This document shows positions 13,748-49,099 of a stretch of DNA of 64,000 bases, one piece after another. Position 1 is the stretch's first letter. Every line of letters starts with the position of its first letter. This DNA comes from Malacoraja senta (taxonomy: Eukaryota), in NCBI GenBank assembly GCA_038087875.1, contig CM075981.1:1116001-1180000 (forward strand), written 5' to 3'. The translations under genes and the position numbers were made by a program. The notes under the pieces are model-generated. The model was not told the origin of the DNA, did no database searches, and saw only the letters and a list, made by a program, of their open reading frames with translations.

Positions 13748-13760
13748 TCTGAAACTCGGC

Positions 13761-21012: not shown

Positions 21013-21335
21013 CAGCGCCATAGATTTTCACGAGGAAACTGCAGGGCATGTCACTGCTGGAGATGGACACGTTGACCATTTCACTGGATTTTGATCCACG
21101 TTGATTTGAGGCTGTGCAATAATATTGATGGTGCTGGTGTTTGAATGATTGACAATGTAGATCCAGGGTTTTGTCGTCTCTGAGATCTTGGAATCCTTAG
21201 ATGGGGTCTTTTCATACCAGCTGTAGCTAATGGGAAGGGATCCACTGACCGACTCACAGGACACTGTCACTGAGCCCCCGAGACAGGAGACATTGGCTGG
21301 TGACAGAAATTCAAGCTCAGGAACAGACACTGGTT
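21013..21335 (-). pseudogene. FCRL-like C2 exon (C2b) with a 2-bp frameshift (323 nt versus 321 nt in its paralogue)
   Basis: Splice sites are intact. TCA GA GAC GAC contains a dinucleotide duplication at ~21177-21182, giving a premature TGA at 21030-21028. Confidence 0.8.
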
Positions 21336-21519
21336 CTGTGGGAAAGGAGGAAACACTGGGAACATCTGAAAAATCAAACACTCGCCAATATCCAGCATTT
21401 CTGTATCTTAGCCAGAGCCGCCAGGTTGGAATCTGACCCATCCATCTCCATAGAGTCATAGAGTCATACAGAGTAGAAACAGGCCCTTCAGTCGAACTTG
21501 CCTGTGCTGACCAACACGA

Positions 21520-22345
21520 CATAGAAACATAGAAACATAGAAAACATATAAAATAGGTACAGGTGGAGGCCATTCGGCACTTCGAGCCAGCACCGCCATT
21601 CATTGTGATCATGGCTGATCGTTCCCTATCAATAACCCGTGCCTACCTTCTCCCCATATCCCTTGACTCCACTAGCCCCTAGAGCTCTATCTACTGTACT
21701 CTCTCTTAAATCCATCCAGTGGCCTCCACTGCCCTCTGTGGCAGGGAATTCCATAAATTCACAACTCTCTGGGTGAAAAAGTTTTTTCTCACCTCAGTCT
21801 TAAATGACCTCCTATAACACGGTGGCCCCTGGTTCTTGACTCGCCCAACATTGGGAACATTTTTCCTGCATCTAGCTTGTCCAGTCCTTATATAATTTTA
21901 TATGTCTCTATAAGACCCCCCCCCCTCATCCTTCTAAACTGCAGTGAATACAAGCCTAGTCTTTTCGATCTTTCCTCATATGACAGTCCCGCCCTCACAG
22001 GGATCAATCTCGTGAACCTACGCTGCAATGCCTCAATCACAAGGATGTTCTTCCTCAAATTAGGAGACCAAAACTGTACACAATACTCCAGATGTGGTCT
22101 CACCAGAGCCCTATACAACTGCAGAAGAACCTCTTTACTCCTATACTGAAATCCTCTTGTTATGAAGGCCAACATTCCATTAGCTTTCTTCACTGCCTGC
22201 TGTACCTGCACGCCAACTTTCAGTGACCGGTGTACAAGGACATCCAGTTCTCGCTGTACCCCCCCCTTACCTAACCTAACCCCATTGAGATAATAATCTG
22301 CCCCCCTTCGTTTTGCAGCCAAAGTGGATAACCTCACATTAACCT
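21520..22345 (-). mobile_element. CR1 LINE 3' part with (TTCTATGT)n tail, nested in an older CR1 end
   Basis: ORF 21888-22337 is CR1 RT C-terminus; the insert is absent from the 12.7-kb paralogue. Confidence 0.85.
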
Positions 22346-22896
22346 CACGACCAATCTACACTAGTTCCACCTGCCCTTTCTTGGCCCTTAACCCCCTAAA
22401 CTTATCTTATTCATATACCTGTCCAAATGTTTCTTAAATGTTGCGATAGTACCTGCCATAACTACACCTGTCGGCAGTTCGTTTCATATACCTACCAACA
22501 TTTGAGTAAAAACGTTACTCCCCATGTCCTTGTTAAATCATTCCCCCCTCATCTTAAACCTATGTCCTCTGGTTCTCGATTCCCCTACTCTGGGCAAACG
22601 ACTTTGTGCATTTACTCGATCTATTCATCGCATGATTTTGCACCTGCCATAAGATCATCCCTCATCCTCATGCGTTCCAAGAAATAATGTCCTAGTCTGC
22701 TCAATTTTCTATTGTCTATTGTCTATTGTCTATAACCCCTCCCTGTAAGGCAGGCCCTCAAGTCATCGCATCATCCTTGTAAGTCTTCTCTGCGCCCTAT
22801 CCAACGTAACAGCATCTTTCCATAATCATGGTGATTAAAACGGACCATAAATCAGACAAATCATCAGACAATCTTGCAATCTCTTTTACATTTCAG

Positions 22897-23269
22897 GAAT
22901 TGCCAACAGGAAAAGGGAGCATCGTTTATGCAACACTGTCGGACATTCAAAGCAACAACGAAGCTGCCCATTGGTCTAATCAAAATCAAAATGTGTATGC
23001 AACAGTGCAATTATGAAGGAAATCGACAGGGACACTCCTGTGCAGATGAGGACAATGTCTGCGACACAGATGTTACATTTCAAAGCGACAGCCAAATTGC
23101 CCGTCAGAAAGCTCCTGCTCCTCACAATCCATTTAGCAGATTTATACTTCTCTGTGTCTCTCCATCCTCCCAGCTGCCAGAACTACCATGTCTGCCACTG
23201 TACCAGTACACAGCAGCACCATCTATCTTTGTTTTTCAATTCCAGCATCTGCAGTTAATCTTCTTTTAA
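22897..23269 (+). pseudogene. Antisense ITIM-exon paralogue (copy 2), truncated after 39 codons
   Basis: cttttacatttcag|GAA encodes ELPTGKGSIVYATLSDIQSNNEAAHWSNQNQNVYATVQL*. A 2-bp deletion follows downstream. Confidence 0.72.
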
Positions 23270-23579
23270 TCTGAAACTCTGCCACAATTCTACAATACCA
23301 ACATTCAATCACCTCATTAGTGCAACAGTATCACTATCAACAACTTTTAAATTTCCTTGTATAAAATTGTTGATAGTGATACCGTTGCACTAATGAGGTG
23401 TGTGAATGGCGGTATTGTAGAATTATGTTTAGGGAGCGAATGGGAAAATATAATAATATAGAACTGGTGTGACCGGTGATCGCTAGTCGGTGTGGACTCC
23501 ATGGGCCGAAGGATCCGTTTTCAAGTTGCATTTGTAAACTACTACTAAATATCCGGGTGAACCTTTTCTGCAACCTCCG

Positions 23580-24975
23580 TTTTCACCACCCCGCTCGCAC
23601 AGCTCGCAATTGGCCCTGACCTTACTCTTTTATCCCTTCTCGAACTTTCCTTCCCAATAATTCGAGAATAGTTGTAATTTTTCCTGTACTCACTTCCCCT
23701 TCAACTCCATCTTTATACTTCCAATTTGTCAATCCCTCCCCCCCACACTCTTTAGTTTTAACCCACACGTGTAATACCTAGCAAACCTGCCTGCAAGATC
23801 GTCCAGTTAAGGTGTAATCCGCCCCTTTTGTGCAGGTCACCCCTACCCAAGAAGAGATCCCAGTAGTTTATTAATCTAAATCCTTGCTCCCTGCACCAGG
23901 CCCTCAGCCACACATTCAGATCCACGATCTCCCTGTTCCTGTCCTCACTAGCACGAGGTAGTGGAAGCAATCCAGAGATAACCACCCTAGAAGTCCTGCT
24001 TTTCAGTCTTCTTCCTAACTCTCTGAACTCACTTTGGAGAACCTCCTTCCTCTCTTCCCGATGTCGGTTTGCCTACATGCACAATTACTGCCGGCTGTTC
24101 ACCTTCTCTCTCGAGGATGTTCTGAATTCGGCTCGTGATATCTTGAACCCTGGCACCAGGGAGGCAACAGACCATCTGCACGTCTCATCGGCCGCCACAG
24201 AATCTCCTGTCTGCTCCTCGGACAATGGAGTCACCCACCACTATGGCTCTGCCCGACGCCGGTCATGTCCCATCTCTAGAAGTGGAGCCACCGATGTGTC
24301 CGTTGCTTGGACTGGAAGCATCGTCTCTCCCGATAGTTCCCAAGGGAGCGTACCTGTTTTCATTAGGCACAGCCACCTGGGTCTCGGGCACTCCACGGTT
24401 ACCACCCTTTCTCTCAGTCACACACCTCCGTTCTTCCCATATCCTCGGCGTGACAACGTCACTGTAGGTCCTGTCCAGGAAAATCTCGTTTTCCCGGATG
24501 GCCCTGAGGTCATCCAACTGAGGTTCTCCAGTGCCCCAACACGGTCCTTCAGGAGCTGAACCTGAACACACTTGCCACAGTAGTAGCAGCCAGAGGCTCC
24601 ATCCGTGTCCCAGGGCTCCCATTTCCTGCAAACATCACTCTGCCTCATCTTACGCATCATGTGTTCACCGCGTCCCATCCTCTCCAGCTTCTTGCACAGC
24701 CTCCTCTCCTCAGCCTCCTCGAAGACTCTCGAGCCAAAGACTCACACTTTACTCACAACGCACTTCCCTCACAAGGCCGCTCCCTCACTGTGGCTCCCCT
24801 AGAGCAGCCTGAAAAATTGACTGATAATTTGCCTAATTTGCCAATTTACAAACGAAATTCTTCAGATTTAAACTGTTTTTTCCCTGTGACTGACACCTTT
24901 CCCACGGGTTTCAGCCTATAAGCTCTTCTCCCTGCTTCTCTTGATTGCTGCTTCTCCAAGATCCACATAAGTACT
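23580..24975 (-). mobile_element. CR1 5' portion (ORF1 zinc finger plus SGNH-esterase remnant), paralogous to ~41370-42790
   Basis: Encodes CRKWE...CGKC and VVISGLLP...LNW motifs. Confidence 0.8.
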
Positions 24976-25186
24976 GAGGGCTCTGTGGGCCGAAGGATCC
25001 GTTTCCATGTTGCATTTGTAAACTACAACTAAATATCCCGGTGAACTTTTTCTGTAACCTCTCCAAACCTTTCACATCTTTTGTTTTATAAAGCGGCGAC
25101 CAGAACTGTGCACCAGACTCCCACCTAACAAATGTTTTGTGCCGATGTCAAAGTGGAGACATAAAGTCACTCAGTGAGAAACCTAC

Positions 25187-25504
25187 CTTCAGATACTTGG
25201 AGATGTACTTTAAATGTTGGTTCGCCAGGTGTACTAATTCCACAGCTGTACCATCCTGTATCTCCAGAGTGAAGATCCTCCACAGTCACAGTAAATATTC
25301 CTCGTGCCAGGTTATCTGTGATTGACACTCTTCCGCTCTGTCCATGTTTCCCATTTGTTTCCACTACATGTGTACACTGGCGACTTGTCCCAGGGCACCA
25401 GTATTTTGTGTGTGAGCGGTACACTGCTGCATAGTGACAATCGATTGTGATCGCTCTTCCCACAACTCCTCTTACTTCGCTTTCTGCCCACAGTGCGCCT
25501 GAAA
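25187..25504 (-). CDS. CD300/pIgR-like Ig V-domain exon (V2'), intact, phase 1-1
   Basis: ccttcag|TTTCAG...GAAG|GTAGGT encodes (V)SGALWAESEVRGVVGRAITIDCHY...KYWCPGTSRQC...GRVSITD...DTGWYSCG. The second Cys pair in C-C' is characteristic of CD300/pIgR/TREM. An alternative acceptor at 25498 is also in frame. Confidence 0.93.
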
Positions 25505-25929
25505 CTGAAGGAAAAATATTTAATAAATAGAAGAGCAAAATAGCCTTTCACAAACATATACATTATAGTATTCATGAATGTGTACAAGGGAGTCTGCCCA
25601 ATCATTTCTTAACTCTGTTGAATTCCACCTAGATTGCGATGAGAGACAGATACTGTACACCGTCCCTCACCATCTGCACAGGTCGTTCCAAAGCGCTTCC
25701 CAGCCAATGTGGGTGTGAATCGTGAAGAATGATGCATTGAACACGGAGCCTGTTGCAATTGGAAGGCGCTGCCTAGGGCGTCTTGGTGAGTTGCTGCAGT
25801 GCATCGTGCAGATGGTGCAAACTGCTGCTGTTCTGAATCAGCGGGGGAGATTGAGGATGGGGTGTCTATCAAGCGCGATTCTCGGTCATGAAACCAAGCA
25901 AAAGTGTTTAGCGAAACTATGGCCTAGGC

Positions 25930-26165
25930 CAGTGCTTCTTAAACTGGTGAATGGTTCACTCAAGGGTGAATGAAATTATTTTGGGGTGAATGAGTTAATT
26001 TTTTTTTGCTCATGTGACAAAATAAATGATCTATAAAATTATACACAAGGGAGAATAAGACGAAAATTACCCCAAAAAATCATTAAAAAATTTAGTCGAA
26101 GGTGAATGAAATGTTGTGATAAAGACTCAATGGTGAATGACACTGAAATAGTTTAAGAAGCACTG
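25930..26165. mobile_element. hAT-type MITE; paralogous copy at 43774-44014
   Basis: 16-bp TIRs CAGTGCTTCTTAAACT / AGTTTAAGAAGCACTG with an 8-bp TSD gcctaggc/gccttggc. Confidence 0.88.
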
Positions 26166-26785
26166 GCCTTGGCTGCGCTACTTCTCGCTGTTGTAAACCA
26201 TGCACGCTCTCTTCTGGTCTTCCAATCTGAGCATCTCCTCGCCTATTGGGGGTTTCATTTTAAAATTCTCTTTGACAAAATAAGGGTTATACTCGATGGA
26301 GTGACGACCACGGAGATTCCACTTTCATGTTGTGAGATTACTGGAGTTACAGTGATTCACACAAATTAACAGAGTTAAAATCATGAACAAGATCATGAAA
26401 TTGTACATCCTTTGTTATAAATGATGATGGATCAAAAAAAATGCATTTGGTTGCTTTCTCAGTCTCAAAGTGACTGTGAGATCTTAAATGGCAGCCAGAA
26501 AATCATTTTTAAGGCAGAAGGCAGAAATTTGATGGAATGCACTCAACCCGTTGTGATAAGTGCAGATCTTTCTCTCCTTTCGAAGTTCAACACCTCCCAG
26601 GTGAAAGCAACAGGCAATTATTTGCCAGTCCCCCAAACAAACTCTCGCATTTTACGCCAGGAGCTAAATGATGCCGCCTGCAAATACCAAGAAACCCACG
26701 AACATCACCACAAGGTGAAAAGCAGCAGCTCCAAGAACACGAGATGAATTGTGAAGCAGTATTCCCACGGGAAATTAACACTCAC

Positions 26786-27106
26786 CTGTATTGTTGATTT
26801 CTGTCACATAACTGCACGTTCCTGCTTCTTTGAATACTTTCACGTTGAGTATTTCACTGGAGTTTGTCCCACGATTATTTGAGGCTTTGCAGTAATATCG
26901 AAGGTGTTCGCCTCTGAGGATTTCACAACTCAGGTCCAGTTGATTCCTCGACACATTCGTTGACCACCCATACTCGTTCTTCTCAAACCATGTGTAATTG
27001 ATGGGAAGTGATCCACGGACAGACTCACACGACACTGACACTGAGCCTCCGAGTCGTGAAGCATTTGCTGGTGACAGATATCTGAACACAGGAGCAGACA
27101 CAGGTT
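26786..27106 (-). CDS. FCRL-like Ig C2 exon (C2a'), intact, 321 nt, phase 1-1
   Basis: cattcccacag|AACCT...ACAG|GTGAGT encodes EPVSAPVF...SCESVRGSLPINYTW...YYCKASNNRG. Confidence 0.92.
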
Positions 27107-27496
27107 CTGTGGGAATGGAGCAAACATTCAGTCACCTGTATGAACAGATAAAATCCAAACACTTGCTAAATCTCAGCAGCCTTTTATCTCAGCCCGAACC
27201 ATCCGTTTGATTTCTCACCGGCTCATCTACATCTCTGTGAGTGTGTGAAGCCCAGAAACCGAAGAAGGTTAGAGTTATGGAGAACCGAAAGAGACCCATC
27301 ACAACAGCTCATTCATGCCAAACAACATGTCTTTCTAGGCAATTTCCATGTCCCTTATCACTCGCATTGATCCCAATCACTTCCGGTGGGGCGACATGTT
27401 GGAGTAGTCGCACTTTTCCACGCTCCCGACCTTTTCACCTTTTCACCTCCAACTAACCAGGCCGACTCGGGCAGGGAGGACTAACCAGTGACAGCC

Positions 27497-28211
27497 ATGC
27501 CTCCGAAGAAGGCAATAACAGCGGAGGAAGGCGAAGAAATAAAAAGAGCGCTGGATTTTATGACGGAGGAGATTTCTGCTGTCAAACAACAGCAGAAAGC
27601 CATCCTCGACCTGGTGGCGGAGCTAAAGGCTCTCCGGATCTAGAGCGCCGAAAAGGACCAGCGACTGGTGTTCCTGGAGAGCAGAGTTGCGGACCTGGAG
27701 CAGTACACCAGAGCGAATAACGTTATCATTACCGGGCTCAGTATAAAGCCCTGGTCATACGCACGGGCGGTGACTGACGACAGCGGGGGGGAGCCCGGGG
27801 CAATGGATACAAGCTCCACGGAGCAACAGGTGGCGGCCTTCCTGCAGTCAAAAGGAATACACTTGGACTGCGATAACATCGAGGCTTGTCACCCCCTGCC
27901 CAGGAGAAAATCCAAAGAGGATAAAAATAGCGATGACAAACCAGCCATCATAATAAGGTTTGTCAACAGGAAATATAAAGTTAGTCTCCTAAAACAAGGA
28001 AGACAGTTGAAGGGAACAAAAGTATTTATGAATGAACACCTAACAAAACGAAATGCCGACATAGCCCGACAAGCACGATACCTTAAGAAACAGAAAAATA
28101 TACTAAATACCTGGACTGCAAACTAAAATCTTTATTAAATTAAATGGAACACCAGAGGAAGCCAAAGTGCTGGTCATTAGAGATATTGCAGACCTGGACA
28201 AATACCAATGA
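27497..28211 (+). pseudogene. LINE ORF1 (coiled coil plus RRM-like region) with one nonsense codon and one 2-bp deletion
   Basis: MPPKKAITAEE...LRI*SAEKDQRLVFLESRVADLEQY...IIIRFVNRK...FMNEHLTKRNA. TAG at 27641; frameshift at ~28124, after which KIFIKLNG...DKYQ* continues in another frame. Confidence 0.8.
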
Positions 28212-28256
28212 TCATAAAACGGGATTGTGAGGTGAAATTTATTTACACACGCAACT

Positions 28257-31200
28257 ATGGCATACACTGAAGGAATTCAGTCATTTACATCTGGAAATGG
28301 CAGTCAAGTAATTAAAATAATAAGCGAAAAGAAACAACTGAAGTTACAACCATTTGAATATACCGATCACAATTTACAGGATTTGGAATACGATATAGAC
28401 CCGGACAATAATTTTTACTTTAATTCTAACGACAAAAATATCTGCTGCTACTACACAGAGGAACAGTATAATCAGAATATTAATGCAAAAGGCAAATTAT
28501 CTATTATCCACTTTAATAGCAGGAGCCTCTATGCGAATTTCAATAGTATTAAAGAGTATTTACAAAAATGTTTACAGCCATTCAATGTCATCGCAATATC
28601 TGAAACATGGATTAATCAGGAAAAGGGAATTGATTTTGAGATGGACGGATATGATTTCAATTACATCAATAGAAAAAATAAGGGGGGAGGAGGGGTAGCA
28701 CTATATGTGGATACAACTCTGAATTATAAGGTAGTAGATAATATGACAACTGTGGTTGACAATCTGCATGAATGTATAACTATAGAAATAATTAATGGTG
28801 GAAATAAAAATGTAATCATTAGTTGTATATATAGGGCAAGTATTAAAATCTTCAGGGGCTGGATGGAGAGTATGTTTTCAACAACAAGTAGTAAATCAGT
28901 GTTTTTATGTGGAGATTTCAATATTGACCTACTAAATCCTAATCAACACAACCTTACAGAAGATTTTATTAATACTATGTACAGCATGAGTCTATTTCCT
29001 AAAATCACTAGACCGAGTAGAATTACTTCCCATTGCGCTACACTCATTGACAATATATTTAATAATGATGTGGAAAATAAAATAGTAAGTGGATTATTAA
29101 TTAATGATATAAGTGACCATCTGTCAGTTTTTATAGTTTATGATAATATCCACAGGAACAACAAACCAAACAAATTAATAGAATATAGACGAGTGAGATC
29201 GGAGGAAGCTATCAATGCACTAAAAAAGGATCTATTGGCACAAAACTGGGATATAATATACCAAAAAAGAGACATTGATAGTGCTTATGAAACATTTATT
29301 GCTATGTTTAAGTCATTATATGATAACAATTGTCCAATTAAAGAATATAATAGAAAATCAAAATATACTAAATGTCCATGGATTTCAAAGGGATTACAAA
29401 ATGCTTGTAAAAAAAAAAATGCCCTATACAGAGATTTTATAAGAGAGAGAACTAAAGATACAGAAAATAAATATAAAAAGTATAAAAATAAATTAACTTA
29501 CATCATAAGAGAAAGCAAGAAAGATTATTATAAGAAGAAATTAGATGACAATAAAGACAATATAAAAATAATATGGAGCATACTTAATAGCATTATCAGA
29601 AATGGTCCGGGGAGAACAAATTACCCGAAGTATTTTATTGATAAGGATAAGGAAAATTACAATATGGAAGATATAGCTAATAGCTTTAATAATTTTTTTG
29701 TAAATATTGGACCAGACCTGGCTAAACAAATCCCTGATTCAGGGACATCTGGAGAAACTCCTGAGAATTTAGTGGAGAGAAATCCCTGCTCTATGTTTCT
29801 TACGGCAGTAGAAGAAAAAGAACTGTTGGATATTGTCAAAACATGTAAAAATAAAAAGTCTACCGATTTCAATGACATTGACATGTCGCTAGTTAAGATG
29901 GTCATTGAGGGGATCTCCAAACCTTTAACATTCATCTGTAATTTATCCTTCCAAACCGGTACTTTTCCAATTCAAATGAAAATAGCAAAAATAATACCAA
30001 TATACAAAACTGGGAACAAGCATCATTTTACAAACTATAGACCTGTTTCCTTACTCCCACAATTTTCCAAAATATTAGAAAAAATGTTTAATAATAGATT
30101 AGACAAATTTGTAGAAAAGAATAAATTAATCACAGAAAGTCAATATGGATTCAGAACAAATAGATCAACATCACTTGCAATACTAGAATTAATTGAAGAC
30201 ATCACAAACGCCATTGATAAAAAATTATATGCAGCTGGGATATTCATTGACATAAAAAAAGCATTTGATACAATTAATCATGATATTTTATTAAAAAAAT
30301 TGGAGAGGTATGGAATTAGAGGAATAGTACTGGACTGGATTAAAAGCTACTTAAGTAACAGGCAACAGTTTGTAAATCTGGGTAGTCACATTTCTACATG
30401 CTTGGACATTGTGTGTGGTGTACCACAGGGGTCAGTGCTGGGCCCAAAATTATTTATCATGTACATAAATGATATTTGTAATGTGTCCAATGTCTTGAGG
30501 CTGGTTTTGTTTGCAGATGATACAAATATTTTTTGTTCTGGGGAAAATTTAAAACAGCTATTGGATAAAATAATAAAAGAAATGGGTAAATTGAAAATAT
30601 GGTTTGATAGGAATAAAATTTCATTAAATCTGAGTAAAACTAAAATAATGTTATATGGTAATTGTAGAATAAATACACTAGTAAGTATAAAGATAAATGG
30701 GGTGGAAGTTGAAAGAGTGCATGAAAATAAATTTCTTGGGGTTATAATTGACGATAAAATAAGCTGGAAATCACATATTAAACATGTAAAATTAAAATTG
30801 TCAAAAAGTATCTCTGTATTATACAAAGCCAAGCAAGCTCTGGATTACAAATCACTCCGTATTCTTTATTGTTCATTAATTTTACCCTACTTAAATTATT
30901 GTGCAGAAGTCTGGGGTAATAATTATAAAAATTCGATACACTCATTAACCATGATGCAAAAAAGAGCAATTCGTATTATCCATAATGCTAAGTATCTGGG
31001 TCATACGAATCCATTATTTTTAGAGTCAAAATTATTAAAATTAGAAGATTTGGTTACATTCAAAACAGCTCAGATAATGTTTAGGGCCAAAAATAAAAAA
31101 TTACCTGGAAACATTCAAAAATTATTTAACGAGCGTGTGGGGGGTTACAATTTAAGAGGAATATTTAACTTTAAGAAACAAAAAGTCCGTACGACTAGAA

Positions 31201-31343
31201 AAACCTTTTGTATTTCGGTTTGTGGAGTAGGAGTGTGGAATAAATTGAACTGGGAATTGAAGCAATGCACAAACATGAATCATTTTAAAATGATATATAA
31301 AAAAATAATTCTCAAGGGGTACAGGGATGGAGGGGATGGTTGA
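28257..31343 (+). CDS. LINE ORF2 (APE endonuclease plus reverse transcriptase), uninterrupted, 1028 aa
   Basis: Contains [45 protein letters not shown] and FADDT. Confidence 0.95.
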   Translation: MAYTEGIQSFTSGNGSQVIKIISEKKQLKLQPFEYTDHNLQDLEYDIDPDNNFYFNSNDKNICCYYTEEQYNQNINAKGKLSIIHFNSRSLYANFNSIKEYLQKCLQPFNVIAISETWINQEKGIDFEMDGYDFNYINRKNKGGGGVALYVDTTLNYKVVDNMTTVVDNLHECITIEIINGGNKNVIISCIYRASIKIFRGWMESMFSTTSSKSVFLCGDFNIDLLNPNQHNLTEDFINTMYSMSLFPKITRPSRITSHCATLIDNIFNNDVENKIVSGLLINDISDHLSVFIVYDNIHRNNKPNKLIEYRRVRSEEAINALKKDLLAQNWDIIYQKRDIDSAYETFIAMFKSLYDNNCPIKEYNRKSKYTKCPWISKGLQNACKKKNALYRDFIRERTKDTENKYKKYKNKLTYIIRESKKDYYKKKLDDNKDNIKIIWSILNSIIRNGPGRTNYPKYFIDKDKENYNMEDIANSFNNFFVNIGPDLAKQIPDSGTSGETPENLVERNPCSMFLTAVEEKELLDIVKTCKNKKSTDFNDIDMSLVKMVIEGISKPLTFICNLSFQTGTFPIQMKIAKIIPIYKTGNKHHFTNYRPVSLLPQFSKILEKMFNNRLDKFVEKNKLITESQYGFRTNRSTSLAILELIEDITNAIDKKLYAAGIFIDIKKAFDTINHDILLKKLERYGIRGIVLDWIKSYLSNRQQFVNLGSHISTCLDIVCGVPQGSVLGPKLFIMYINDICNVSNVLRLVLFADDTNIFCSGENLKQLLDKIIKEMGKLKIWFDRNKISLNLSKTKIMLYGNCRINTLVSIKINGVEVERVHENKFLGVIIDDKISWKSHIKHVKLKLSKSISVLYKAKQALDYKSLRILYCSLILPYLNYCAEVWGNNYKNSIHSLTMMQKRAIRIIHNAKYLGHTNPLFLESKLLKLEDLVTFKTAQIMFRAKNKKLPGNIQKLFNERVGGYNLRGIFNFKKQKVRTTRKTFCISVCGVGVWNKLNWELKQCTNMNHFKMIYKKIILKGYRDGGDG

Positions 31344-32429
31344 CAAGTGGGGGTTGATGTTTATCTTGCTTTACTATTGTTTACTTATGTTTGGGTACTT
31401 CAGATATGAAGTTTGTATGTACATAATAGTTGTATGTATATATATGTCTGTAGGTATTATGGGAAATTGCCTAGGGTAGTATTATTATTAGTAATGAATT
31501 GATTTTTAAATATGGTAGAAGTGTTGGGGAAAAGGGGTGAGATTTAATAAGTTATTCTTCTTCTCACTCCTTTTCGAGCTTGTACAGATACAGAGTTGGA
31601 CATTGGAACTTTGATTTTGTTATTCTCATTGCTTTGTAAATATTGATTGTAATGTCCAATTGTTTGATAATTTCGATTTTGTTAATATTAATGTCTTTAA
31701 TGTCTTTACTTGTTCGGAATAAATAAATAAATAAATAAATAAATAAAATCTACGCAACTGTCCAAAATGTATTTTAAATGCTGTTATTCTAACTGCCTCA
31801 ACAACTTCCTCTGGCAGCAGGTTCCATACACATATCACCCAATGTGTGGAAAATGTTGTCCCTCAGAACAGAAGTTGGGATGTTATGTTTAAGTTGTACA
31901 TATGTTGTTGAGGTCGAACTTGGGCAAATTGTGTTCAGCTTCGGCTGTACAAAACATGCCATTACAGTAAATTACATCTTAATAGTCCCCCCTCTTGAAA
32001 TAGTTCCCATTATGTCTGTCCTCCACTTCCTCATCCCACACACCGTGGGTAAATGAACATGCTTCTCGTGATTGATACATTTCTATAAGTTCCTCGCTCA
32101 ATCATTTCCACACCAATGAATGAAGTCTGAGTTTAACCAATCGCTCCCTGCGTCAATCCCATCCTGTCCAGACAGCGTCATCCTAAAACCTTTCTGCACG
32201 CTGTCCGCCTCAAAGGCAGCATCTCTCGAGGGAAGGAATGGGTGACGTTTCGGATCGTGACCCTTCTTCAGCCTGAGAGTCATGAGAAAGCGAGACAGAA
32301 GAGAAATGGAAGGGTAAGGTGTGAAAACAAGTGATCAAAGGTGAATGTAGACTGGATCATTGTCAGCTGAAAGGAAGGTGACAACGAGGCTTACAATCAA
32401 TAAAATATAATCAGGAGGACAGTGAAATT

Positions 32430-35400
32430 AAATGGCAAACTGGGACAGGGCGGGATGGAGACAGGAGTAAAGCAAGGGTTACTTGAAGTTAGAGAAGTCA
32501 ATATTCAAGTCGCTGGGTTGTAGGCTGACCAATCGAATTATGAGCTGCTGTTCCTCCTATTTGGATTTGGCGTCACTCTGACAGTGGAGGAGGTCCAGGA
32601 CAGAATGGTGAGTTTGGAAATGGGAGCGGGAATTAAAGTGTTTCACAATCGGGAAGTAGCGTAGGCCGAGGCAGACTAAGAGGAGTTGTTCAGCGCCAGG
32701 TGCATTGAGATGGGGCTCCTAAGGGACCGTATTACGAACCTGGAGCAGCAGCTCGATGACCTCCATCTGGTCAGGGAGAGCGAGGAAGTCATAGAGAGGA
32801 GTTAGAGAGAGGTGGTCACTCCAAGACCACAAGAGGCAGGCAAGTTGGTCACGGTTAGGAGGGGCAAGGGGCAGAGGCAGGGACTAGAGAGTACCCCGGT
32901 GGCTGTACACCTTGACAATAAGTATTCCTGTTTGAGTACTGTTGGAGGGGACAACCAACCTGGGGGTAGCGACAGTGGCCGGGCCTCTGGTACAGAGACC
33001 GGCCCTGTTGCACAGAAGGGTAAGTAAAATAAGAGGAGGGCAGTAGTAATAGGGGACACTATAGTTAGGGGGTCAGATAGGCGATTCTGTCGACGCAGTC
33101 AGGAGACACGGATTGCCTCCCTGGTGCCAGAGTCTGGGATGTATCTGAACGTGTCCAAGATATCCTGAAATGGGAGGGAGAGGAGCCCGAGGTCGTGGTA
33201 CATATAGGTACCAATGACATAGGTAGAAAAAGAGAAGAGGTCCTGAAAGGAGAATTTAGGGAGTTAGGAGGAGAGTTAAGGAGAAGGACCGCAAAGGTAA
33301 CAATCTTGGGATTACGGCCTGTGCCACGCGACAGTGAGAGTAGGAATGGAGCGAGGTGCAGGATAAGTGCGTGGCTGAAGGACTGGTGCAGAGGGCAGGG
33401 ATTCAAGTTTCTGGATCATTGGGACCTCTTTTGGGGAAGGTGTGACCTGTACAAAAAGGACGGGTTGCACTTGAACCCGAGGGGGACCAATATCCTGGCG
33501 GGGAGATTTGCAAAGGCTACTGCGGTGACTTTAAACTAGAATGGTTGGGGGGAGGGACTCAAATAGAGAAAGCTAGTAGGCAGTGTGTGAGGCAGGAGGC
33601 AGAGAAGGGAAGCACTCAGACCCAATATGTAGGGGGGAAAGAAGAAAAAAATTAATAAACAGAGAATAGGATGTGGTGGGTTTCTTAACTGTGTGAGCAG
33701 CGAGACAGAGGGGTGTAAAATGAGGGTAGAAGCAATAGGTAGCAAGGTGAAAAAGTAAACGTTGCAGGCAGACAAATCCAGGGCAAAAATCAAAAAGGGT
33801 CACTTTTCATGATAATTGTTTAAGGGGTAAGAGTGTTGTAAAATCAATCCTGAAGGCTTTGTGTCTCAAAGCAAGGAGCATTCGTAATAAGGTGGATGAG
33901 TTGAATGTGCAGATAGCTATTAATGATTATGATATAGTTGGGATCACGGAGACATGGCTCCAGGGCGGCCAAGGCTGGGAGCTGAACATCCAGGGATATT
34001 CAATATTCAAGAGGAATAGAAAGAAAGGAAAATGTGGTTAGAGAGGAGATTAACGCAATAGAAAGGAAGGACATTAGCTTGGAGGATGTGGAATCGATAT
34101 GGGTAGAGCAGCGAAACACTAAGGGGCAGAAAACGTTAGTGGGTGTTGTGTACAGGCCACCTAACAGTAGTAGTGGAGTTGGGGATAGAATCAAACAGGA
34201 AATTAGAAATGCGTGTAACAAAGGTAAAACAGTTATAATGGGAGACTTCAATCTACATATATATTGGGTGAATCAAATTGGCAGGGGTGCTGAGGAAGAG
34301 GATTTCTTGGACGGTATTGGTTTTCTAAACCAACATGTAGAGGAACCAATGGGAGAGCAGGCTTTTCTAGACTGGGTATTGAGTAATGAGGAAGGGTTAG
34401 TTAGCAGTCTTGTTGTGCATGGCCCCTTGGGCAAGAGTGACCATAATAAGGTTGAGTTCTTCATTAGGATGGAGAGTGACATTGTCAATTCAGAAACAAG
34501 GGTTCTGAAGTTAAAGAACGGTGACTTTGAGGGTATGAGACATGAATTGGCCAAGATGGACTGGCAATTGATTCTTAAAGGGTTGACGGTGGATATGCAA
34601 TGGAATGCATTTAAAGACTGCATGGATGAACTACAACAATTGTTCATCCTAGTTTGGCAACAGAATAAATCAGGGAAGGTAGTGCATCCGTGGATAACAA
34701 GGAAATCAGGGATAGTATCAAAACAAAAGATGAAGCGTACAAATTAGCCAGAAAAAGCAGCCTACCAGAGGACTCGGAGAAATTCAGAGTCCAGCAGAGG
34801 AGGACAAAGGGCTTAATTATGAAAGAAAACTGGCAGGGAACATAAAAACTGACTGCAAAAGTTTTTATAGATATGTGAAGAGAAAAAGATTAGTTAAAAC
34901 AAATGTAGGTCCCTTGCAGTCAGAAACAAGTGAATTGATCATGGGGAACAAGGACATGGCAGACCAATTGAATAACTACTTTGGTTCTGTCTTCACTGAG
35001 GAAGACATAAATAATCTGCCGGAAATAGCAGGGGACCGCGGGTCAAATGAGATGGAGGAACTGAGGAACTGGTTAGCCGGGAAGTGGTGTTAGGTAAATT
35101 GAATGGATTAAAGGCCGATAAATCACCAGGGCCAGATAGGCTGCATCCCAGAGTACTTAAGGAAGTAGCCCCAGAAATAGTGGATGCATTAGTGATAATT
35201 TTTCAAAACTCCTTAAATTCTGGAGTAGTTCTTGAGGATTGGAGGGTAGCTAATGTTACCCCACTTTTTAAAAAGGGAGGGAGAGAGAAAACGGGGTATT
35301 ACAGACCAGTTAGTCTAACATCGGTAGTGGGGAAACTGCTAGTGTCAGTTATTAAAGATGGGATAGCAGCACATTTGGAAATTGGTGAAATCATTGGACA

Positions 35401-37200
35401 AAGTCAGCATGGATTTACGAAAGGTAAATCATGTCTGACGAATCTTATAGAATTTTTCGAAGATGTAACTAGTAGAGTGGATAAGGGAGAACCAATGGAT
35501 GTGTTATACCTGGACTTTCAGAAGGCTTTCGACAAGGTCCCACATAAGAGAATAGTATACAAACTTAAAGCACACGGTATTGGTGGTTCAGTATTGATGT
35601 GGATAGAGAACTGGTTGGCAAACAGGAAGCAAAGAGTAGGAGTAAACGGGTCCTTTTCAGAATGGTAGGCAGTGACTAGTGGAGTACCACAAGGCTCAGT
35701 GCTGGGACCCCAGCTATTTACAATATATATTAATGATTTTGACGAGGGAGTTGAATGCAACATCTCCAAGTATGCGGATGACACGAAGCTGGGGGGCAGT
35801 GTTAGCTGTGAGGAGGATGCTAGGAGGCTGCGAGGTGACTTGGATAGGCTGGGTGAGTGGGCAAATGCATGGCAGATGTAGTATAATGTGGATAAATGTG
35901 CGGTTATCCTCCTTGGTGGCAAAAACAGGAAAGTAGACTATTATCTGAATGGTGGCCGATTAGGGAAAGGGGAGATGCAGCGAGACCTGGGTGTCATGGT
36001 ACACCAGTCATTAAAAGTAGGCATGCAGGTGCAGCAGGCAGTGAAGAAAGCGAATGGTATGTTAGCATTCATAGCAAAAGGAGTATAGGAGCAGGGAGGT
36101 TCTACTGTAGTTGTACAGGGTCTTGGTGAGACAACACCTGGAGTATTGTGTACAGTTTTGGTCTCCAAATCTGAGGAAAGACATTGTTGTCATAGAGGGA
36201 GTACAGAGAAGGTTCACCAGACTGATTCCTGGGATGTCAGAACTTTCATATGAAGAAAGACTGGATAGACTCGGCTTGTACTCGCTAGAATTTAGGAGAT
36301 TGAGGGGGAATCTTATAGAAACTTACAACATTCTTAAGGGGTTGGACAGGCTAGATGCAGGAAGATTGTTGGGGAAGTCCAGGACAAGGGGTCACAGTTT
36401 AAGGATCAAGGGGAAATCTTTTAGGACCGAGATGAGAAATACATTTTTCACAAAGAGTGGTGAATCTCTGGAATTCTCTGCCACAGAAGGTAGTTGAGGC
36501 CAGTTCATTGGCTATATTTAAGAGGGAGTTAGATGTGGCCCTTGTGGCTAAAGGGATCATGGGGTATGGAGAGAAGGCAGGTACAGGATACTGAGTTGGA
36601 TAATCAGCCATGATCATATTGAATGGCAGTGCAGGCTCGAAGGGCCGAATGGCCTACTCCTGCTCCTATTTTTTATGTTCTATGTTCAATGAAATGATCG
36701 TCGAGCCTGCGCTTGATCTCCCATTTACGATATCTGCTTTTTCACAACTGGAACAGCGGATATAGTAGATCAGGTTAGAGGAGATGCAAGTGAACCTCTG
36801 CCTCACCCGAAAAGACTGTTGGAGTCCTTGGATGGAGTGGACGGAGGAGGTATAGGGACAGGTGTTGCATCTGCTGCAGTTGTTGGGGAAGGTACCTGGG
36901 GAAGGGGCGGTGACCAAGGAGTTGCGGAGGAAACGGTCTCTTCGGTAAACAGAAGGTAGTGGAGATGGAAAGATGTGGCCTCACCCGAAAAGACTGTTGG
37001 AGTCCTTCGGCGGAGTTGACGGAGGAGGTATATAGACAGGTGATGCATCTCCTGCAGTTCTTATGGAATGTATCTGGGGAGGGGCTGGTTTGGGTGGGAA
37101 AGGACGAGTTGACCAGGCAGTTACGGAGGGAACTGTCTCTTCGGAGAGCACAATGTGCTGGAGATGGAAAGATGATGTCAGTTGTGGGATCCCATTAGAG
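32430..37200 (-). mobile_element. Penelope-like fragment (32430-32700 and 36690-37200) split by a CR1 insertion; orthologous to the Penelope at ~52550-52710 and 59635-60235
   Basis: Encodes GTFPNNCSRCNTC...FTCISSNLIY. The sequence rejoins across the CR1 insert (ttcagcg|aaatgatcgtcgagcctgcgc). Confidence 0.75.
32700..36685 (+). mobile_element. Near full-length degenerate CR1 (esterase ORF1, broken APE-RT ORF2)
   Basis: Encodes VHIGTNDIG, GDFN, GPLGKSDH, YRPVSLTS and [10 protein letters not shown]; the 3' tail is ttttatgttctatgtt. Confidence 0.9.
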
Positions 37201-37769
37201 GCGAGTCGTACAGCGTAGAAACAGGCCCTTCGGTCTAACTTGCCCACGCTGACCAACACGCCCAATCTGCACTAGTTCCACCGGCCCTTGCTTGGCCCCT
37301 CTAAACTTACCCTATTCATGTACCTGCCCAAATTTTTCTTAAATGTTGCGATAGTACCTGCCATAACTACTTCCGTCGGCAGTACGTTTCATATACCTGC
37401 CACCCTTGTGTAAAAACGTTGCTCCCCAGATTCTTGTTAAATCATTCCCCCCTTATCTTTAAACTATGTCCTCTGGTTCTCGATTCCCCCGCTCTGGACA
37501 ACAGACTCTGTGCATTTACTCGATCTATTCGTCGCATGATTTTTTTTAATATCCCTCATCCTCCTGCGCTCCAAGAAATAAAGTCATCGACCCCTCCCTG
37601 AACATGTCCCTGTAGGTCGGGCCCTCAAGTCATCACAATATCCTTGTAAGTATTGTAAGTCTTCTCTGCGCCCTATCCAATTTGTCAGCATCTATCCTAT
37701 AACATGATTAAAACTGACAACAAATCAGACAAATCATCAGACAATCTTTGATTATCTTTTTCATTTCAG

Positions 37770-38136
37770 GAATTACCAGCAGGAAAGAAGAGCATCGTTT
37801 ATGCAACAGTGTTGGATATTCATAGCAACAAGGAAGCTGCTTTGTCTAATGAGAATCAAACTGTGTGTGGAGTGCAATTTCGAAGGAAATCGACAGGGAC
37901 ACTCCAGTACAGATGAGGACAATGTCAGCTACTCAGATGTTACATTTCAAAGCGACAGCCAAATTGCCCGTCAGAAAGCTCCTTCTCCTCACAATCCATT
38001 TACCAGATTTGTACATCTCTGTGTCTCTCCATCCTCCCAGCTGCCAGAACAACCATGATTGCCACTGTACCAGTACATAGCAGCACCATCTCTCTTTGTT
38101 TTATATTTCCAGCATCTGCAGTTAATCTTCTTTTAA
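37770..38136 (+). pseudogene. Antisense ITIM-exon paralogue (copy 3), frameshifted
   Basis: tttttcatttcag|GAA encodes ELPAGKKSIVYATV...STGTLQYR* (TGA ends at 37916). The VSYSDV ITIM survives in another frame. Confidence 0.72.
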
Positions 38137-38354
38137 TCTGAAACTCTGCCACATTTCGACAACACCAACATTCAATCACCTCATTAGTGCAACAGTATCA
38201 CTATCAACAGCTTTTTAAATTCCTTGTAAAAAATTGTTGATAGTGATACTGTTGCACGAATGAGGTGTGTGAATGGCGATATTGTAGAATAGTGTGTAGG
38301 GAGCGAATGGGAAAGAGGAATAACATAGAACTAATGTAACCGGTGATCGCTAGT

Positions 38355-41300
38355 CCATAGACAATAGACAATATACAGTAAATAATAGGTGCAGGAGTAG
38401 CCATTCGGCCCTTCAAGCCAGCACCGCCATTCAATGTGATCATGGCTGATCATCCCCAATCTGTACACCGTTCCTGCCTTCTCCCCATATCCCCTGACTC
38501 CGCTATCTTTAAGAGCCCTATCTAGCTCTCTCTTTAAAGTATCCACAGAACCGGCCTGCACCTAAGGTAGAGAATTCCACAGACTCACAACTCTCTGTGA
38601 GAAAAAATGTTTCCTCGTCTCCGTTCTAAATGGCTTACCCCTTATTCTTAAACTGTGGCCCCTGGTTCTGGACTCCCCCAACATCGGGAACATGTTTCCT
38701 GCCTCTAGCGTGTCCAAACCCTTAACAATCTTACATGTTTCAATAAGATCCCCTATCATCCTTCTAAACTCGAGTGTACAAGCCCAGCCGCTCCATTCTT
38801 TCAGCATATGACTGTCCCGCCATCCCGCGAATTAACCTTGTAAACCTATGCTGCACTCCCTCAATAGCAAGAATGTCATTCCTCAAATTCGGGGACCAAA
38901 ACTGCACACAATATTCCAGGTGTGGTCTCACTGGGGCCCTGTACAACTGCACAAGAACCTCTTTGCTCCTATACTCGACTCCTCTTGTTATAAAGGCCAC
39001 CATGCCATTTGCTTTCTTCACTGCCTGCTGTACCTGCATGCTTACTTTCATAGACTGGTGAACAAGGACCCCCCAGATCCCATTGTACTTCCCCTTTTCC
39101 AAACTTGACACCATTTAGATAGTAATCTGCCTTCCTGTTTTTGATACCAAAGTGGATAACCTCACATTTATCCACATTAAGCTTCATCTGCCAAGCATCT
39201 GCCCACTCCCCCAACCTGTCCAAGTCACCCTGCGTTCTCATTGCATCCTCCTCACAGTTCACACTGCCACCCAGCTTTGTGTCATCTGCAAATTTGTTAA
39301 TGTTACTTTGAATCCCTTCATCCAAATCATTGATGTATATTGTAAATAGCTGCGGTCCCAGGACCGAACCTTGCAGTACCCCACTCGTCACTGCCTGCCA
39401 TTCTGAAAGGGACCGTTAATCCCTACTCATTGTTTCCTGTCTGCCAACCAATTTTCTATCCATGTCAGCACTTTACCCCCAATACCACGTGCCCTAATGT
39501 TGCCCACTGTTCTCCTTTGTGAGACCTAAACAAATGCTTTTTGAAAGTCCAGGTATATTACATCCATTGGCTCTCCCTTGTCCATTTTCCTAGTTACATC
39601 CTCAAAAAATTCCGGAAGATTAGTCAAGTATGATTTCCCCTTCGTAAATCCATACTGACTCGGACCGAAGGTACACAAAAATGCTGGAGAAACTCAGCGG
39701 GTGCAGCAGCATCTATGGAGCGAAGGAAATAGGTAACGTTTCGGGCCGAAACCCTTCTTCAGACTCGGACCGATCCTGACTCGGACCGATCCTGTTACTG
39801 CTATCCAAATGTGCCACTATTTCATCTTTTATAATTGACTCCAGCATCTTCCCCACCACCGATATCAGGCTAACTGGTCTATAATTACCTGTTTTCTCTC
39901 TCGCGCCTTCCTTAAAAAGTGGGATAACATTAGCTACCCACCAATCCACAGGAACTAAATCTAAAGAACATTGGAAAATTATCACCAATGCATCCACGAT
40001 TTCTAGAGCCACTTCCTTAAGAACAATGTGATGCAGACCTGGGTCCTGGGGATTTATCAGCCTTCAGTCCCATCAGTCTACCCAACACCATTTCCTGCCT
40101 AATGTGGATTTCCTTTAGTTCCTCTGTCACCCCAGGTCCTCTGGCCACTACTATATCAGGAAGATTGTTTGTGTCCTCCTTAGTGAAGACGGATCCAAAT
40201 TACCTGTTCAACTCATCTGCCACTTCCTTGTTCTCCATTATAAATTTACATTTTTCAGTCTTCAAGGGTTCAACTTTGGTCTTAACTAATTTTTTCCTCT
40301 TCACATACCTTAAGAAGCTTTTACTATCCTTCTTTATATTCTTGGCTAGCTTAACTTCGTACCTCATCTTTTCTCCCTGTATTGTCTTTTTAGTTATCTT
40401 CTGTTGTTCTTTAAACATTACCCAATCCTCTTGCTTCCCTCTCATCTTTGCTACGTTGTACTTCTTCTCTTTTATTTTTATACTGTCCCTGACGTCCTTT
40501 GTCAGCCACGGTCGCCCTTTACTCCCCTTGGAATTTTTCTTCCTCTTTGGAATGAACTGATCCTGCACTTTCTATGTTATTCCTAGAAATACCTGCTATT
40601 GTTGTTCCACTGTCATCCCTGCTAGGGTATCTTTCCAGTCAACTTAGGCCAGCTCCTCCCTAATGGCTCCATAGTCCCCTCTATTCTAATGTAACACTGA
40701 CACCTCCGATCTACCTTTCTCCCTCTCCAATTGTGGATTAAATCTGACCATATTATGGTCACTACCTCCTAATGGCTCCTTAACCTCACGTTCCTTTATC
40801 AAATCCAGTTCATTACATAACACTAAATCCAGAATTGCCTTCTACCTTGTAGGCTCCAATACAAGCTACTCTAAGGATCCATCATGAACGCACTGCACAA
40901 ACTCCCTTTCTTGGGGTCCAGTACCAATCTGATTTTCCCAGTCTACCTGCATGTTGAAATCTCCCATAACAACTGTATCATTACCTTTACTACATTCCAA
41001 TTTTAACTCCTGATTCAACCTGCACCCAATATCCAGGCTACTGTTTGGGGGCATGTAGATAAGTCCAATTAGGGTCTTTTTACCCTTACAATTCCTTAGT
41101 TCTATCCATACTGACTCCACATCTCCTGTTTCAATGTCACCCCTGGCAAGGGACTGAATTTCATTCCTCACCAACAGAGCTACCCCACTCCCTCTGCCCA
41201 CCTGTCTGTCTTTTTGATAGGAGGTATACCCTTGGATATTCAGTTCCCAGCCCTGGCAGCCATGTCTCTGTAATTCGCACAACATCATACTTGCCAATTT

Positions 41301-42810
41301 CTAACTGAGCCTCAAGCTCGTCCACTTTATTTCTTATACTTCGCGCATTCATATACAACACTTTGACCTCCGTTTCCACCAACCCCCTCGCACCGCTCGT
41401 AATTGGCCCTGACCTTTCTCTTTTATCCCTTCTCGAAATTTCCTTCCCAATAATTTGAGAATCTTTTGTAATTTTTCCTGTACTCACTTCCCCTTCAACT
41501 CCAACTTTATACTCCCAATTTGTCAATCCTTCCCCCCCACTATTTAGTTTAATCCCACACGCGTAGCCCTAGCAAACCTGCCTGCCCGAACGTGGTCCCC
41601 CTCCAGTTAAGGTGTAACCCGTCCATTTTGTGCAGGTCACCGCTACCGAAGAAGAGATCCCAGAGGTTTATGAATCTAAATCCTTGCTCCCTGCACCAGG
41701 CCCTCAGCCACACATTCAGATCCACGATCTCCCTGTTCCTGTCCTCACTAGCACGAGGTAGTGGAAGCAATCCAGAGATAACCACACTAGAAGTCCTGCT
41801 TTTCAGTCTTCTTCCTAACTCTCTGAACTCACTTTGGAGAACCTCCTTCCTCTTCTTCCCGATGTCGTTTGTGCCTACGTGCACAACTTCTGCCGGCTGT
41901 TCTCCTTCTCTCTCGAGGATGTTCTGAATTTGGCTCATGACATCTTGAACCCTGGCACCAGGGAGGCAACAGACCATCCGCACATCTCGTCGGCTGCCAC
42001 AGAATCTCCTGTCTGCTCCTCGGACAATGGAGTCACCCGCCACTATGGCTCTGCCCGACACCACACGAGTCCCATCTCTAGGATTGGAGCCACCGACGTG
42101 TCCGCCGCTTACATTGGAAGCATCGTCTCCCCTGACAGTTCCTGTTTTCATTAGGCACAGCCACCTGGGTCTCCTGCATTCCACGGTTACCACCCTTTCT
42201 CTCAGTCACACACCTTCGTTCTTCGCGTATCCTCGGCGTGACAACCTCACTATAGGTCCTGTCCAGGAATCTCTTGTTTTCCCGGATGGTCCTGAGGTCA
42301 TCCAACTGCTCTTCAGTGCCCCAACACGGTCCTTCAGGAGCTGAACCTGAACACACTTGCCACAGTTGTAGCAGCCAGAGGCTCCATCCATGTCCCTGGA
42401 ATCCCACATCCTGCAAACATCACTCTGCCTCATCTTACCCGTCATGTGTTCACCGCGTCCCGTCCTCTCCAGCTACTTGCGTAGCCTCCTCGAAGACTCT
42501 CGAGCCAAAGACTCACACTTCCCTCACAAGGCAGCTCCCTCACTGCCGCTCCCCTGGAGCAGCCTTGCTTATATTGACTGATAAATTGCCTAATTTGCCA
42601 ATTTACAAACTAAATTCCTCAGATTTAAACTGTTTTTTTCCCTGTGACTGACTCACCTTCTCCACGGGTTTCAGCCAATAAGCTCTGGGCTAACACTGGC
42701 TTTTTGGTGCTCTTTTTAAACTTTTTCCCCCCTGACACCTTTCCCACAGTATTCAGCCAATAAGCTCTTCTCCCTGCTTCTCTTGATTGCTGCTTCTCCA
42801 AGCACTGGGC
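38355..42810 (-). mobile_element. Near full-length degenerate CR1 in the V2-C2b intron
   Basis: ORF1 esterase (GDSIVRG, GTNDIG) at 41549-42193 and ORF2 fragments between 38562 and 41297. Confidence 0.9.
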
Positions 42811-43026
42811 TCGTTGTGGACTCGGTGGGCCGAAGGATCCGTTTCCATGTTGCAATTTGTAAACTACAACTAAATATCCGGGTGAACCTTTTCTGTAACC
42901 TCTCCAAACCTTTGACATCTTTAGTTTTATAAAGCGGCGACCAGAACTGTGCACCGGACTCCCACCTAACACATGTTTTGTCCGTTGCCAAAGTGGAGAC
43001 ATAAAGTCACTCATTGAGAAACCTAC

Positions 43027-43344
43027 CTTCAGATACCTGGAGATGTACTTTAAATGTTGGTTCGCCAGATGTAGTAATTCCACAGCTGTACCATCCTGTG
43101 TCTCCAGAGTGAAGATCCTCCACAGTCACAGTAAATACTCTTCCTGCCGGGTTATCTGTGATTGACACTCTTCCGCTCTGTCCATATTTCCCATTTGTTT
43201 CCACTACATGTGTACACTGGCGACTTGTCCCAGGGCACCAGTATTTTATGTGTGAGCGGTACACTGCTGCATAATGACAATCGATTGTGATCGCTCTTCC
43301 TACAACTCCTCTTACTTCGCTCTCTGCCCACAGTGCACCTGAAA
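43027..43344 (-). CDS. CD300/pIgR-like Ig V exon (V2), intact, phase 1-1
   Basis: ccttcag|TTTCAG...GAAG|GTAGGT. I counted 14 nucleotide differences from V2' over 318 nt, with no stops. Confidence 0.93.
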
Positions 43345-48904: not shown

Positions 48905-49099
48905 AGGTGAAAGCAACAGGCAATTATTTGCCAGTCCCCCAAACAAACTCTCGCATTTTACGCCACGTGCTCACGGTGGCTCCATTGATGCCGCCTGCAA
49001 ATACCTAGAAACTCACGAATATCACAAGGTGAAAAGCAGCAGCTACAAGGACTCGAGAGGAACTGTGAAACAGTATTCCCAAGGGAAAATAATACTCAC

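Follow-up and report, generated by a model that had tools for sequence, protein, structure and literature searches.

The 64-kb stretch of Malacoraja senta DNA analysed here (the window; G000:C5:1116001-1180000, with runs of N at 14862-15061 and 55689-55923) carries on its minus strand a large receptor gene in which a pair of immunoglobulin (Ig) exons, C2a and V2, is found twice. As judged from its sequence, the gene belongs to the skate MDIR (“pIgR-like”) family, and the question we address is how the second exon pair, or module, came to lie in it. Seven Ig-type exons are open on the minus strand of the window, and the exons that make up the gene as we model it are, in the direction of transcription:

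62036-62084, minus strand: leader exon (MDKTMWIPILLISTLP), donor gtgagt, phase 1, homologous to the leader of gene B at 87-135
60697-61017, minus strand: V1 exon, a V-set domain of the pIgR/CD300 type
49100-49420, minus strand: C2a exon, module 1
43027-43344, minus strand: V2 exon, module 1, acceptor and donor both phase 1
26786-27106, minus strand: C2a' exon, module 2, 90% identity with C2a
25187-25504, minus strand: V2' exon, module 2, 95.6% identity with V2
12260-12580, minus strand: C2b' exon
4123-10917, minus strand: inhibitory 3' exons, comprising the stalk (10869-10917), the transmembrane (TM) exon (8542-8630), a cytoplasmic exon (4817-4863) and a tail exon with immunoreceptor tyrosine-based inhibitory motifs (ITIMs; 4123-4398)

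The receptor gene and its family

An eleven-exon model, built with a protein of the skate Rhinoraja as guide, joins these exons into an open frame of 809 aa that runs through the leader, V1, C2a, V2, C2a', V2', C2b', stalk, TM, a short cytoplasmic segment and the tail. All eleven exons have AG/GT sites in compatible phases, the six Ig exons of the model are intact with phase 1 splice sites, and the splice from V2' to C2b' keeps the frame open. The predicted product is a six-Ig ITIM receptor, a type I membrane protein whose TM segment at this inhibitory end has no charged residue and whose tail bears the motifs IMYAVV, VVYADV, and TIYASV. From end to end the model is 81% identical to isoform X1 (803 aa) of a Leucoraja erinacea gene and 77% identical to XP_078277138.1 of Rhinoraja longicauda, and it matches clearnose-skate MDIR3 at 79% over 579 aa and MDIR5 at 74% over 488 aa.

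The three V exons match the Pfam V-set family (E 1e-11 to 1e-13), and their best solved relatives are pIgR (E 3.7e-49) and then CD300/CLM-1. The C2a, C2a' and C2b' exons match Ig_3, Ig_2 and Ig_C17orf99, where only C2a' passes the Pfam cut-off (Ig_C17orf99, 29.8 vs. 26 bits) and C2a and C2b' fall below it. The V exons have at least 150 matches in the genome, most of them on contig C5 between 0.9 and 1.77 Mb, which points to a large clustered multigene family. Named relatives, which bear 2-6 or more C2/I-type domains, are “polymeric immunoglobulin receptor-like” RefSeq models from skates, rays and sharks, together with MDIR3 and MDIR5 of the clearnose skate. Skate MDIRs are described (PMC3031540) as multigenic activating and inhibitory receptors that resemble CD300, TREM and pIgR.

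MDIR3 (P0166, 701 aa) has the same leader, stalk-TM region and ITIM tail with three tyrosine motifs as the window gene, and it likewise alternates pIgR/CD300-type V domains with C2 domains within a large family of inhibitory members and activating members with a charged TM; the window leader also matches that of the L. erinacea isoform X1 (P0153). The two differ in domain order, MDIR3 being V-V-C2-V-C2 (five Ig domains, the extra one a second V1) and the window gene V-C2-V-C2-V-C2 (six Ig domains, the extra ones a C2a-V2 pair). The polymeric immunoglobulin receptor proper has only tandem V domains, a long transcytosis tail and no ITIMs, unlike the window gene with its alternating V and C2 domains and ITIM-like tail; the automatic name “pIgR-like” reflects similarity in the V domains only. 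By sequence, then, the family is a known one, and what appears to be new is an MDIR3-like receptor with an additional in-frame two-domain module.

Sequencing reads add little to this model. In searches of sequencing runs, none contained more than 26% of the words of 25150-27150, and reads from four runs were aligned to 21171-27170 at 90% likeness. The aligned reads are mostly transposon-derived, and the pieces that fall on unique parts differ at 3-10% of letters; the runs therefore come from relatives or paralogues. A single RNA run, from a differently labelled organism, gave a depth of about 1.5 on V2' and of 0.3-0.6 on C2a', with no exon joints listed. Splicing of V2 to C2a', sought as a backward joint on the V2'/C2a' stretch in these same reads, gave no signal.

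The duplicated C2a-V2 module and the joint J1

The C2a-V2 pair occurs with its flanks twice in the window, at 88-90% DNA identity by self-BLAST. A G/A difference 11 nt before the donor distinguishes V2 from V2'. Between the two copies, in the intron that would join V2 to C2a', lies a joint that we call J1, and its position is defined by the following features:

37191-37194: J1, where a V2-C2b-type intron meets a V1-C2a-type intron, with 2-3 bp of microhomology, placed by base-level alignments
37194-37752: TE-R, a high-copy element, ending here at J1
36690-37193, minus strand: copy 2 of a Penelope-like fossil, ending at J1; its other half is at 32438-32695, with a nest of transposable elements (TEs) at 32696-36689 between
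59635-60196, minus strand: copy 1 of the Penelope-like (GIY-YIG) fossil, lying in the V1-C2a intron, with the J1-equivalent point at 60162

To place J1, we took as reference a single-module L. erinacea gene whose introns are not rearranged. In the direction of the gene, the end of TE-R and about 12 bp more are followed directly by the Penelope-like fossil, and a GG at the junction is common to both parents. The break on the TE-R side is equivalent to a point 134 bp before the C2b' acceptor (12580); on the other side, the copy-1 fossil extends past 60162, and the break is therefore internal to the fossil. A local tandem duplication of about 215 bp lies beside J1 in the copy-2 fossil (36800-36975 / 36978-37174).

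Both sides of the joint continue into chains of colinear blocks. On the V1-C2a side, self-BLAST pairs 26599-27376 with 48905-49701 (88%), 31753-32218 with 49688-50160 (90%), 32315-32463 with 52547-52709, 32460-32695 with 59635-59868 (86%), and 36737-37193 with 59889-60162 (80%). On the V2-C2b side, it pairs 37203-37752 with 12714-13273 (86%), 37755-39252 with 13361-14861 (91%), and 37257-38355 with 22346-23488 (84%). The original prediction, made from the sequence of this window, had described colinear blocks to the left and right of about 37,200, and all of them were reproduced. Its breakpoint at about 37197-37205 marks a real joint, which base-level alignment moves to 37191-37194, and its estimates that the joint stops about 500 bp short of V1 and begins about 130 bp before a C2b acceptor agree with that placement.

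The original prediction had allowed that the flanking similarity might prove to be family-level only. TE-R, however, has the same start base and a place directly 5' of the C2b exon in more than 30 paralogues, and its end in paralogues is some 110-134 bp from C2b; in paralogues, too, the Penelope-like fossil is found 370-520 bp 3' of the V exon ahead of C2a; and both occupy equivalent intron positions in L. erinacea and R. longicauda. The similarity on both flanks is positional, beyond family-level. A pure coincidence of TEs was considered and rejected, given that the fossils hold their positions in paralogues and other species and that the block chain continues on both sides.

As predicted, canonical splice sites in phase 1 are present at 43027 (donor) and 27106 (acceptor), which places the second C2a-V2 pair in frame. 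A search for a relic exon within the fused intron (27107-43026) found none. Taken as sequence evidence, these observations indicate that J1 is a real joint of illegitimate recombination, one that puts a second C2a-V2 exon pair in frame.

The LINE marker, the joint J2 and the activating-type cassette

A long interspersed nuclear element (LINE) in the V2-C2b intron serves as a marker for what happened downstream of the second module. The features concerned are:

38356-42686, minus strand: a CR1-like LINE (about 4.3 kb) inserted into copy 1 of the V2-C2b intron, with an esterase-type first open reading frame (ORF1), endonuclease (EN) and reverse transcriptase (RT) regions and a TTGTCTA-type 3' tail
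37755-38355: F block, a fossil ITIM-tail exon in inverted orientation, which all paralogues retain in the V2-C2b intron
23578-24974, minus strand: the 5' part of the LINE in copy 2, about 1.35 kb, with its 5' host junction as in copy 1
23577-23578: J2, where the broken LINE meets a LINE-free V2-C2b-type intron, with about 5 bp of microhomology
18835-23577, minus strand: activating-type cassette, consisting of F'-T' (with a LINE insert at 21528-22340), a putative C2b pseudo-exon (21013-21335), a stalk exon (19732-19780) and a terminal exon encoding a TM with a lysine (Lys-TM; 18835-19018)
15062-18600, minus strand: a DIRS-like retroelement with gag-like and RT-like frames, split by a LINE fragment (16747-17790) and truncated at the assembly gap
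14862-15061: assembly gap (N), which hides a third joint and/or more sequence
12703-14861, minus strand: the rest of the copy-2 V2-C2b intron, with the 3' part of the LINE at 13975-14861, F'' at 13360-13966 and T'' to 12703

In copy 1, the LINE sits between the V2-proximal part of the intron and the F block. In copy 2, it is broken at J2, and its last 0.9 kb lies at 13975-14861, before F''-T''-C2b', with a 3' host junction identical to that of copy 1. Because both the 5' and the 3' junctions of the LINE match those of copy 1, the left part of the copy-2 intron and the unit at 12.7-14.9 kb are halves of one intron, and the shared junctions imply that the second copy originally continued into C2b', TM and the ITIM tail. 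The LINE was found at this site in none of the 11 sampled paralogues that cover it, nor in three L. erinacea genes or the R. longicauda gene. The “orphan” inhibitory unit, which has no leader or V exon (12260-19018 and 4123-10917), is thus most plausibly the 3' end that the upstream gene originally had. The original prediction had derived module 2 from a gene with a Lys-TM end, an origin that the LINE junctions contradict, as they tie module 2 to C2b'-TM-ITIM and would make the Lys-TM cassette a later entry at J2.

The material between the two halves of the intron, that is, F'-T', the C2b pseudo-exon, the stalk, the Lys-TM exon, the DIRS-like element and the N gap, is on this evidence a secondary arrival. 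An 86-bp host segment is repeated around J2 (25060-24975 and 23577-23490), the LINE-free intron starting 86 bp before the insertion site. Identity is 86-91% in every block that the model takes to be a direct duplicate, with the exception of the Penelope-like fossil at J1, and F'-T' of the cassette is 84% identical overall, with its TE-R part just 77-78% identical to the other two copies; this pattern fits the cassette as the later arrival. A donor was sought in the activating pseudogene upstream, which has 83-86% identity to the cassette and no common downstream sequence, and it was not found to be the source. That upstream neighbour (G000:C5:1188158-1212919), of the activating type, appears to have decayed: its C2a, C2b and Lys-TM exons contain stops, and its V2 is split.

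The Lys-TM exon of the cassette is typical of activating members of the MDIR family. Its C2b exon has 323 nt rather than 321, with a 2-bp insertion near 21190 and a TGA in the exon 24 nt before the donor, and would be either a pseudo-exon or an assembly error. The chimeric Lys-TM receptor of five to six Ig domains that the original prediction expected is therefore encoded in part: a five-Ig frame of 626 aa is open only when the C2b pseudo-exon is skipped (V2' to the stalk at 19780-19732 to the TM exon at 19018-18835), and a six-Ig Lys-TM form is not encoded, given the insertion and the stop. With both frames open, one could imagine a paired receptor in a single gene, in which the choice of 3' cassette would join a five- or six-domain ectodomain to the Lys-TM end (626 aa) or to the ITIM end (809 aa), an idea that we regard as doubtful. 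Polyadenylation signals, looked for after either stop codon, were uninformative on the 3' end used.

Two further observations concern the cluster. Copies of the F block lie at 13340-13744, 22835-23266 and 37755-38355 on the plus strand; the block corresponds to the ITIM-tail exon of another subtype of the family, and the protein read from its open frame is similar to the C-terminus of Rhinoraja XP_078277136.1 (ELPAGKGSIVYAT...QIARQKAPSPHNP). A plus-strand array of activating-type genes with a repeat of about 23 kb occupies G000:C5:1.43-1.77 Mb, each gene with several V exons, C2a, V2, C2b and a Lys-TM exon, and contigs C1219, C1977, C4994 and C1824 repeat parts of this array almost exactly; they may be haplotigs or unplaced copies.

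Other skates and the origin of the six-domain receptor

Comparison with the orthologous cluster, which the original prediction had proposed as a check, gave one skate with the same architecture and another joint, and one with tandem 4-Ig genes that do not carry the LINE. Rhinoraja longicauda has the same six-domain ITIM gene (locus L001), colinear with the window from the leader past the ITIM tail, and its protein XP_078277138.1 (P0002, 809 aa) is identical to the window gene product in domain order and length. Unlike the window gene, it has neither the LINE nor the Lys-TM cassette and spans 23.6 kb as against 58 kb. Its joint also differs in place: one side falls within the F block, the other lies 460 bp 5' of C2a', and 18 bp of filler are present, at distances of 720 bp and 1300 bp from the window joint in the two introns. 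The two Rhinoraja modules are 91-96% alike and are mutual closest relatives (support 100/99 and 100/98). As the joint is a different one, module gain by intron-to-intron joining recurs in the family.

L. erinacea presents single-module genes. One locus (L002) holds a single-module gene with both introns intact, and the adjoining locus (L015) holds two complete 4-Ig inhibitory genes in tandem; the neighbours of the window gene are colinear with this species, with a Lys-TM gene upstream and the intergenic region and the next leader downstream. Of the two RefSeq isoforms at L015 (X1, P0153; X2, P0169), X2 is the first gene alone, and X1 joins the V2 of the first gene to the C2a of the second, skipping C2b, TM and tail of the one and leader and V1 of the other (CM054030.1:29531524-29576872). 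X1 has the six-domain ITIM form of the window gene but no genomic joint, and would be either a read-through transcript or an artefact of the gene model. The six-domain form is thus reached in three ways: by the genomic joint described here, by another joint in Rhinoraja, and, at least as a gene model, by read-through splicing in L. erinacea.

In the trees, modules of C2a and V2 group by species despite the conserved gene order (three L. erinacea genes, support 100/99; the two Rhinoraja modules, 100/100), and modules 1 and 2 of the window are as distant from one another as from other paralogues. This suggests gene conversion or lineage-specific duplication, and also concerted evolution in the cluster, and with modules grouped by species the trees can neither date nor polarise the duplication.

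The best overall explanation, to which we give a probability of about 0.55, is a tandem duplication within a single gene, followed by entry of the activating-type cassette at J2. The ancestor would have been a 4-Ig inhibitory receptor with leader, V1, C2a, V2, C2b, stalk, TM and ITIM tail, into whose V2-C2b intron the LINE would have inserted before the duplication. A segment that began about 520 bp 3' of V1 and reached to within about 120 bp of C2b on its 5' side would then have been duplicated in tandem, with the ends of the duplicate joined by microhomology at J1 (37191-37194); as both ends lie in phase-1 introns, the extra C2a-V2 pair would have come in frame and given a six-Ig ITIM receptor of 809 aa. 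Later, the 3' cassette of an activating paralogue (C2b, stalk and Lys-TM), its C2b now frameshifted, would have joined into the copy-2 LINE at J2, splitting the copy-2 intron so that the inhibitory 3' exons appear as an orphan gene. The joints, the LINE junctions common to both copies, the intact exons and reading frames, and the existence in other skates of single-module genes and of a gene with another joint are shown; the order of events, the single step at J1 and the 3' end in use we infer. The haptoglobin Hp2 allele, an in-frame intragenic duplication of two exons by a non-homologous crossover from intron to intron, concerns a different protein family and offers an analogy for the mechanism alone.

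The original prediction had instead proposed that the C2b-stalk-TM end of one gene and the leader and V1 of the next were deleted. Haemoglobin Lepore, where a deletion fuses tandem paralogues of another protein family, is an analogue of this mechanism. Under such a scheme, two full tandem genes would have lost everything from the end of the V2-C2b intron of gene 1 to 520 bp into the V1-C2a intron of gene 2, that is, C2b, stalk, TM and tail, the intergenic DNA, the leader and V1. J1 is equally compatible with this, two complete 4-Ig inhibitory genes lie in tandem in L. erinacea, where one RefSeq isoform already joins V2 of the first to C2a of the second, and modules 1 and 2 are no closer to each other than to other paralogues. 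No step, however, specifically indicates a deletion, and where intragenic duplication makes the joint in one event, the Lepore-type fusion needs two. Both genes would also have to carry the LINE at the same site, which calls for a recent, lineage-specific gene duplication after the LINE insertion rather than for the L. erinacea pair, whose genes do not have the LINE common to the window copies; and given J2, gene 2 was not the Lys-TM gene that had been assumed. With Rhinoraja showing an intron-to-intron module gain inside a compact single gene, we favour the one-step duplication and consider the deletion fusion unlikely, if worth serious attention.

A single replication-based event of serial template switching, of the type known as microhomology-mediated break-induced replication (MMBIR) or fork stalling and template switching (FoSTeS), could have produced J1, J2 and the third joint, which is hidden, all at once: part of the upstream region of the gene itself would have been copied first and part of an activating paralogue next, before the return. 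The microhomology at both visible joints, the local 215-bp tandem duplication beside J1 and the presence of three joints inside 25 kb speak for it. Yet the cassette is just 83-86% identical to the nearest upstream activating gene, the duplicated blocks have diverged by about 10%, so that simultaneity is not demonstrable, and the third joint is hidden, all of which leaves this scenario improbable. An assembly chimera, in which two places of the cluster were wrongly joined near 37.2 kb, might be suspected from the repeats on both flanks, the highly repetitive cluster, the two gaps in the window, and a joint known from the assembly. A misjoin would, however, be expected inside a common repeat and not at the boundary of unrelated elements with an overlap of 2-3 bp, the copies differ by about 10% and carry several private TE insertions, and a gene of this architecture does exist in Rhinoraja; we consider a chimera very improbable indeed.

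Several points weigh against an intragenic duplication as we reconstruct it. A whole-gene duplication followed by a deletion would leave an identical joint, so that the sequence does not separate the two histories, and the tandem 4-Ig genes of L. erinacea make a two-gene precursor conceivable. Copies 1 and 2 do not come out as sisters in the module trees, a clade that is not rejected (p-AU 0.45), and gene conversion blurs the history of the modules. The Penelope-like fossil by J1 is only 76-86% identical between the copies (80% at the J1 block), J1 is known from the assembled sequence, and the splices are predicted from sequence. Finally, the third joint lies under the N gap at 14862-15061, where an entire second 5' half could also be concealed.

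MDIR receptors have been known since 2006 to vary in domain number. An intragenic duplication at J1 would provide a base-pair-resolved example of how an MDIR gains domains, with microhomology joining between phase-1 introns adding a copy of a two-exon module. Another skate arrived separately at this architecture, and read-through splicing may mimic it in a third. What looks like an orphan inhibitory gene would be explained as the original 3' end of this gene. Seen in this way, the locus would illustrate an ordinary route of growth for clusters of Ig-superfamily receptors, with nothing unexpected in it.

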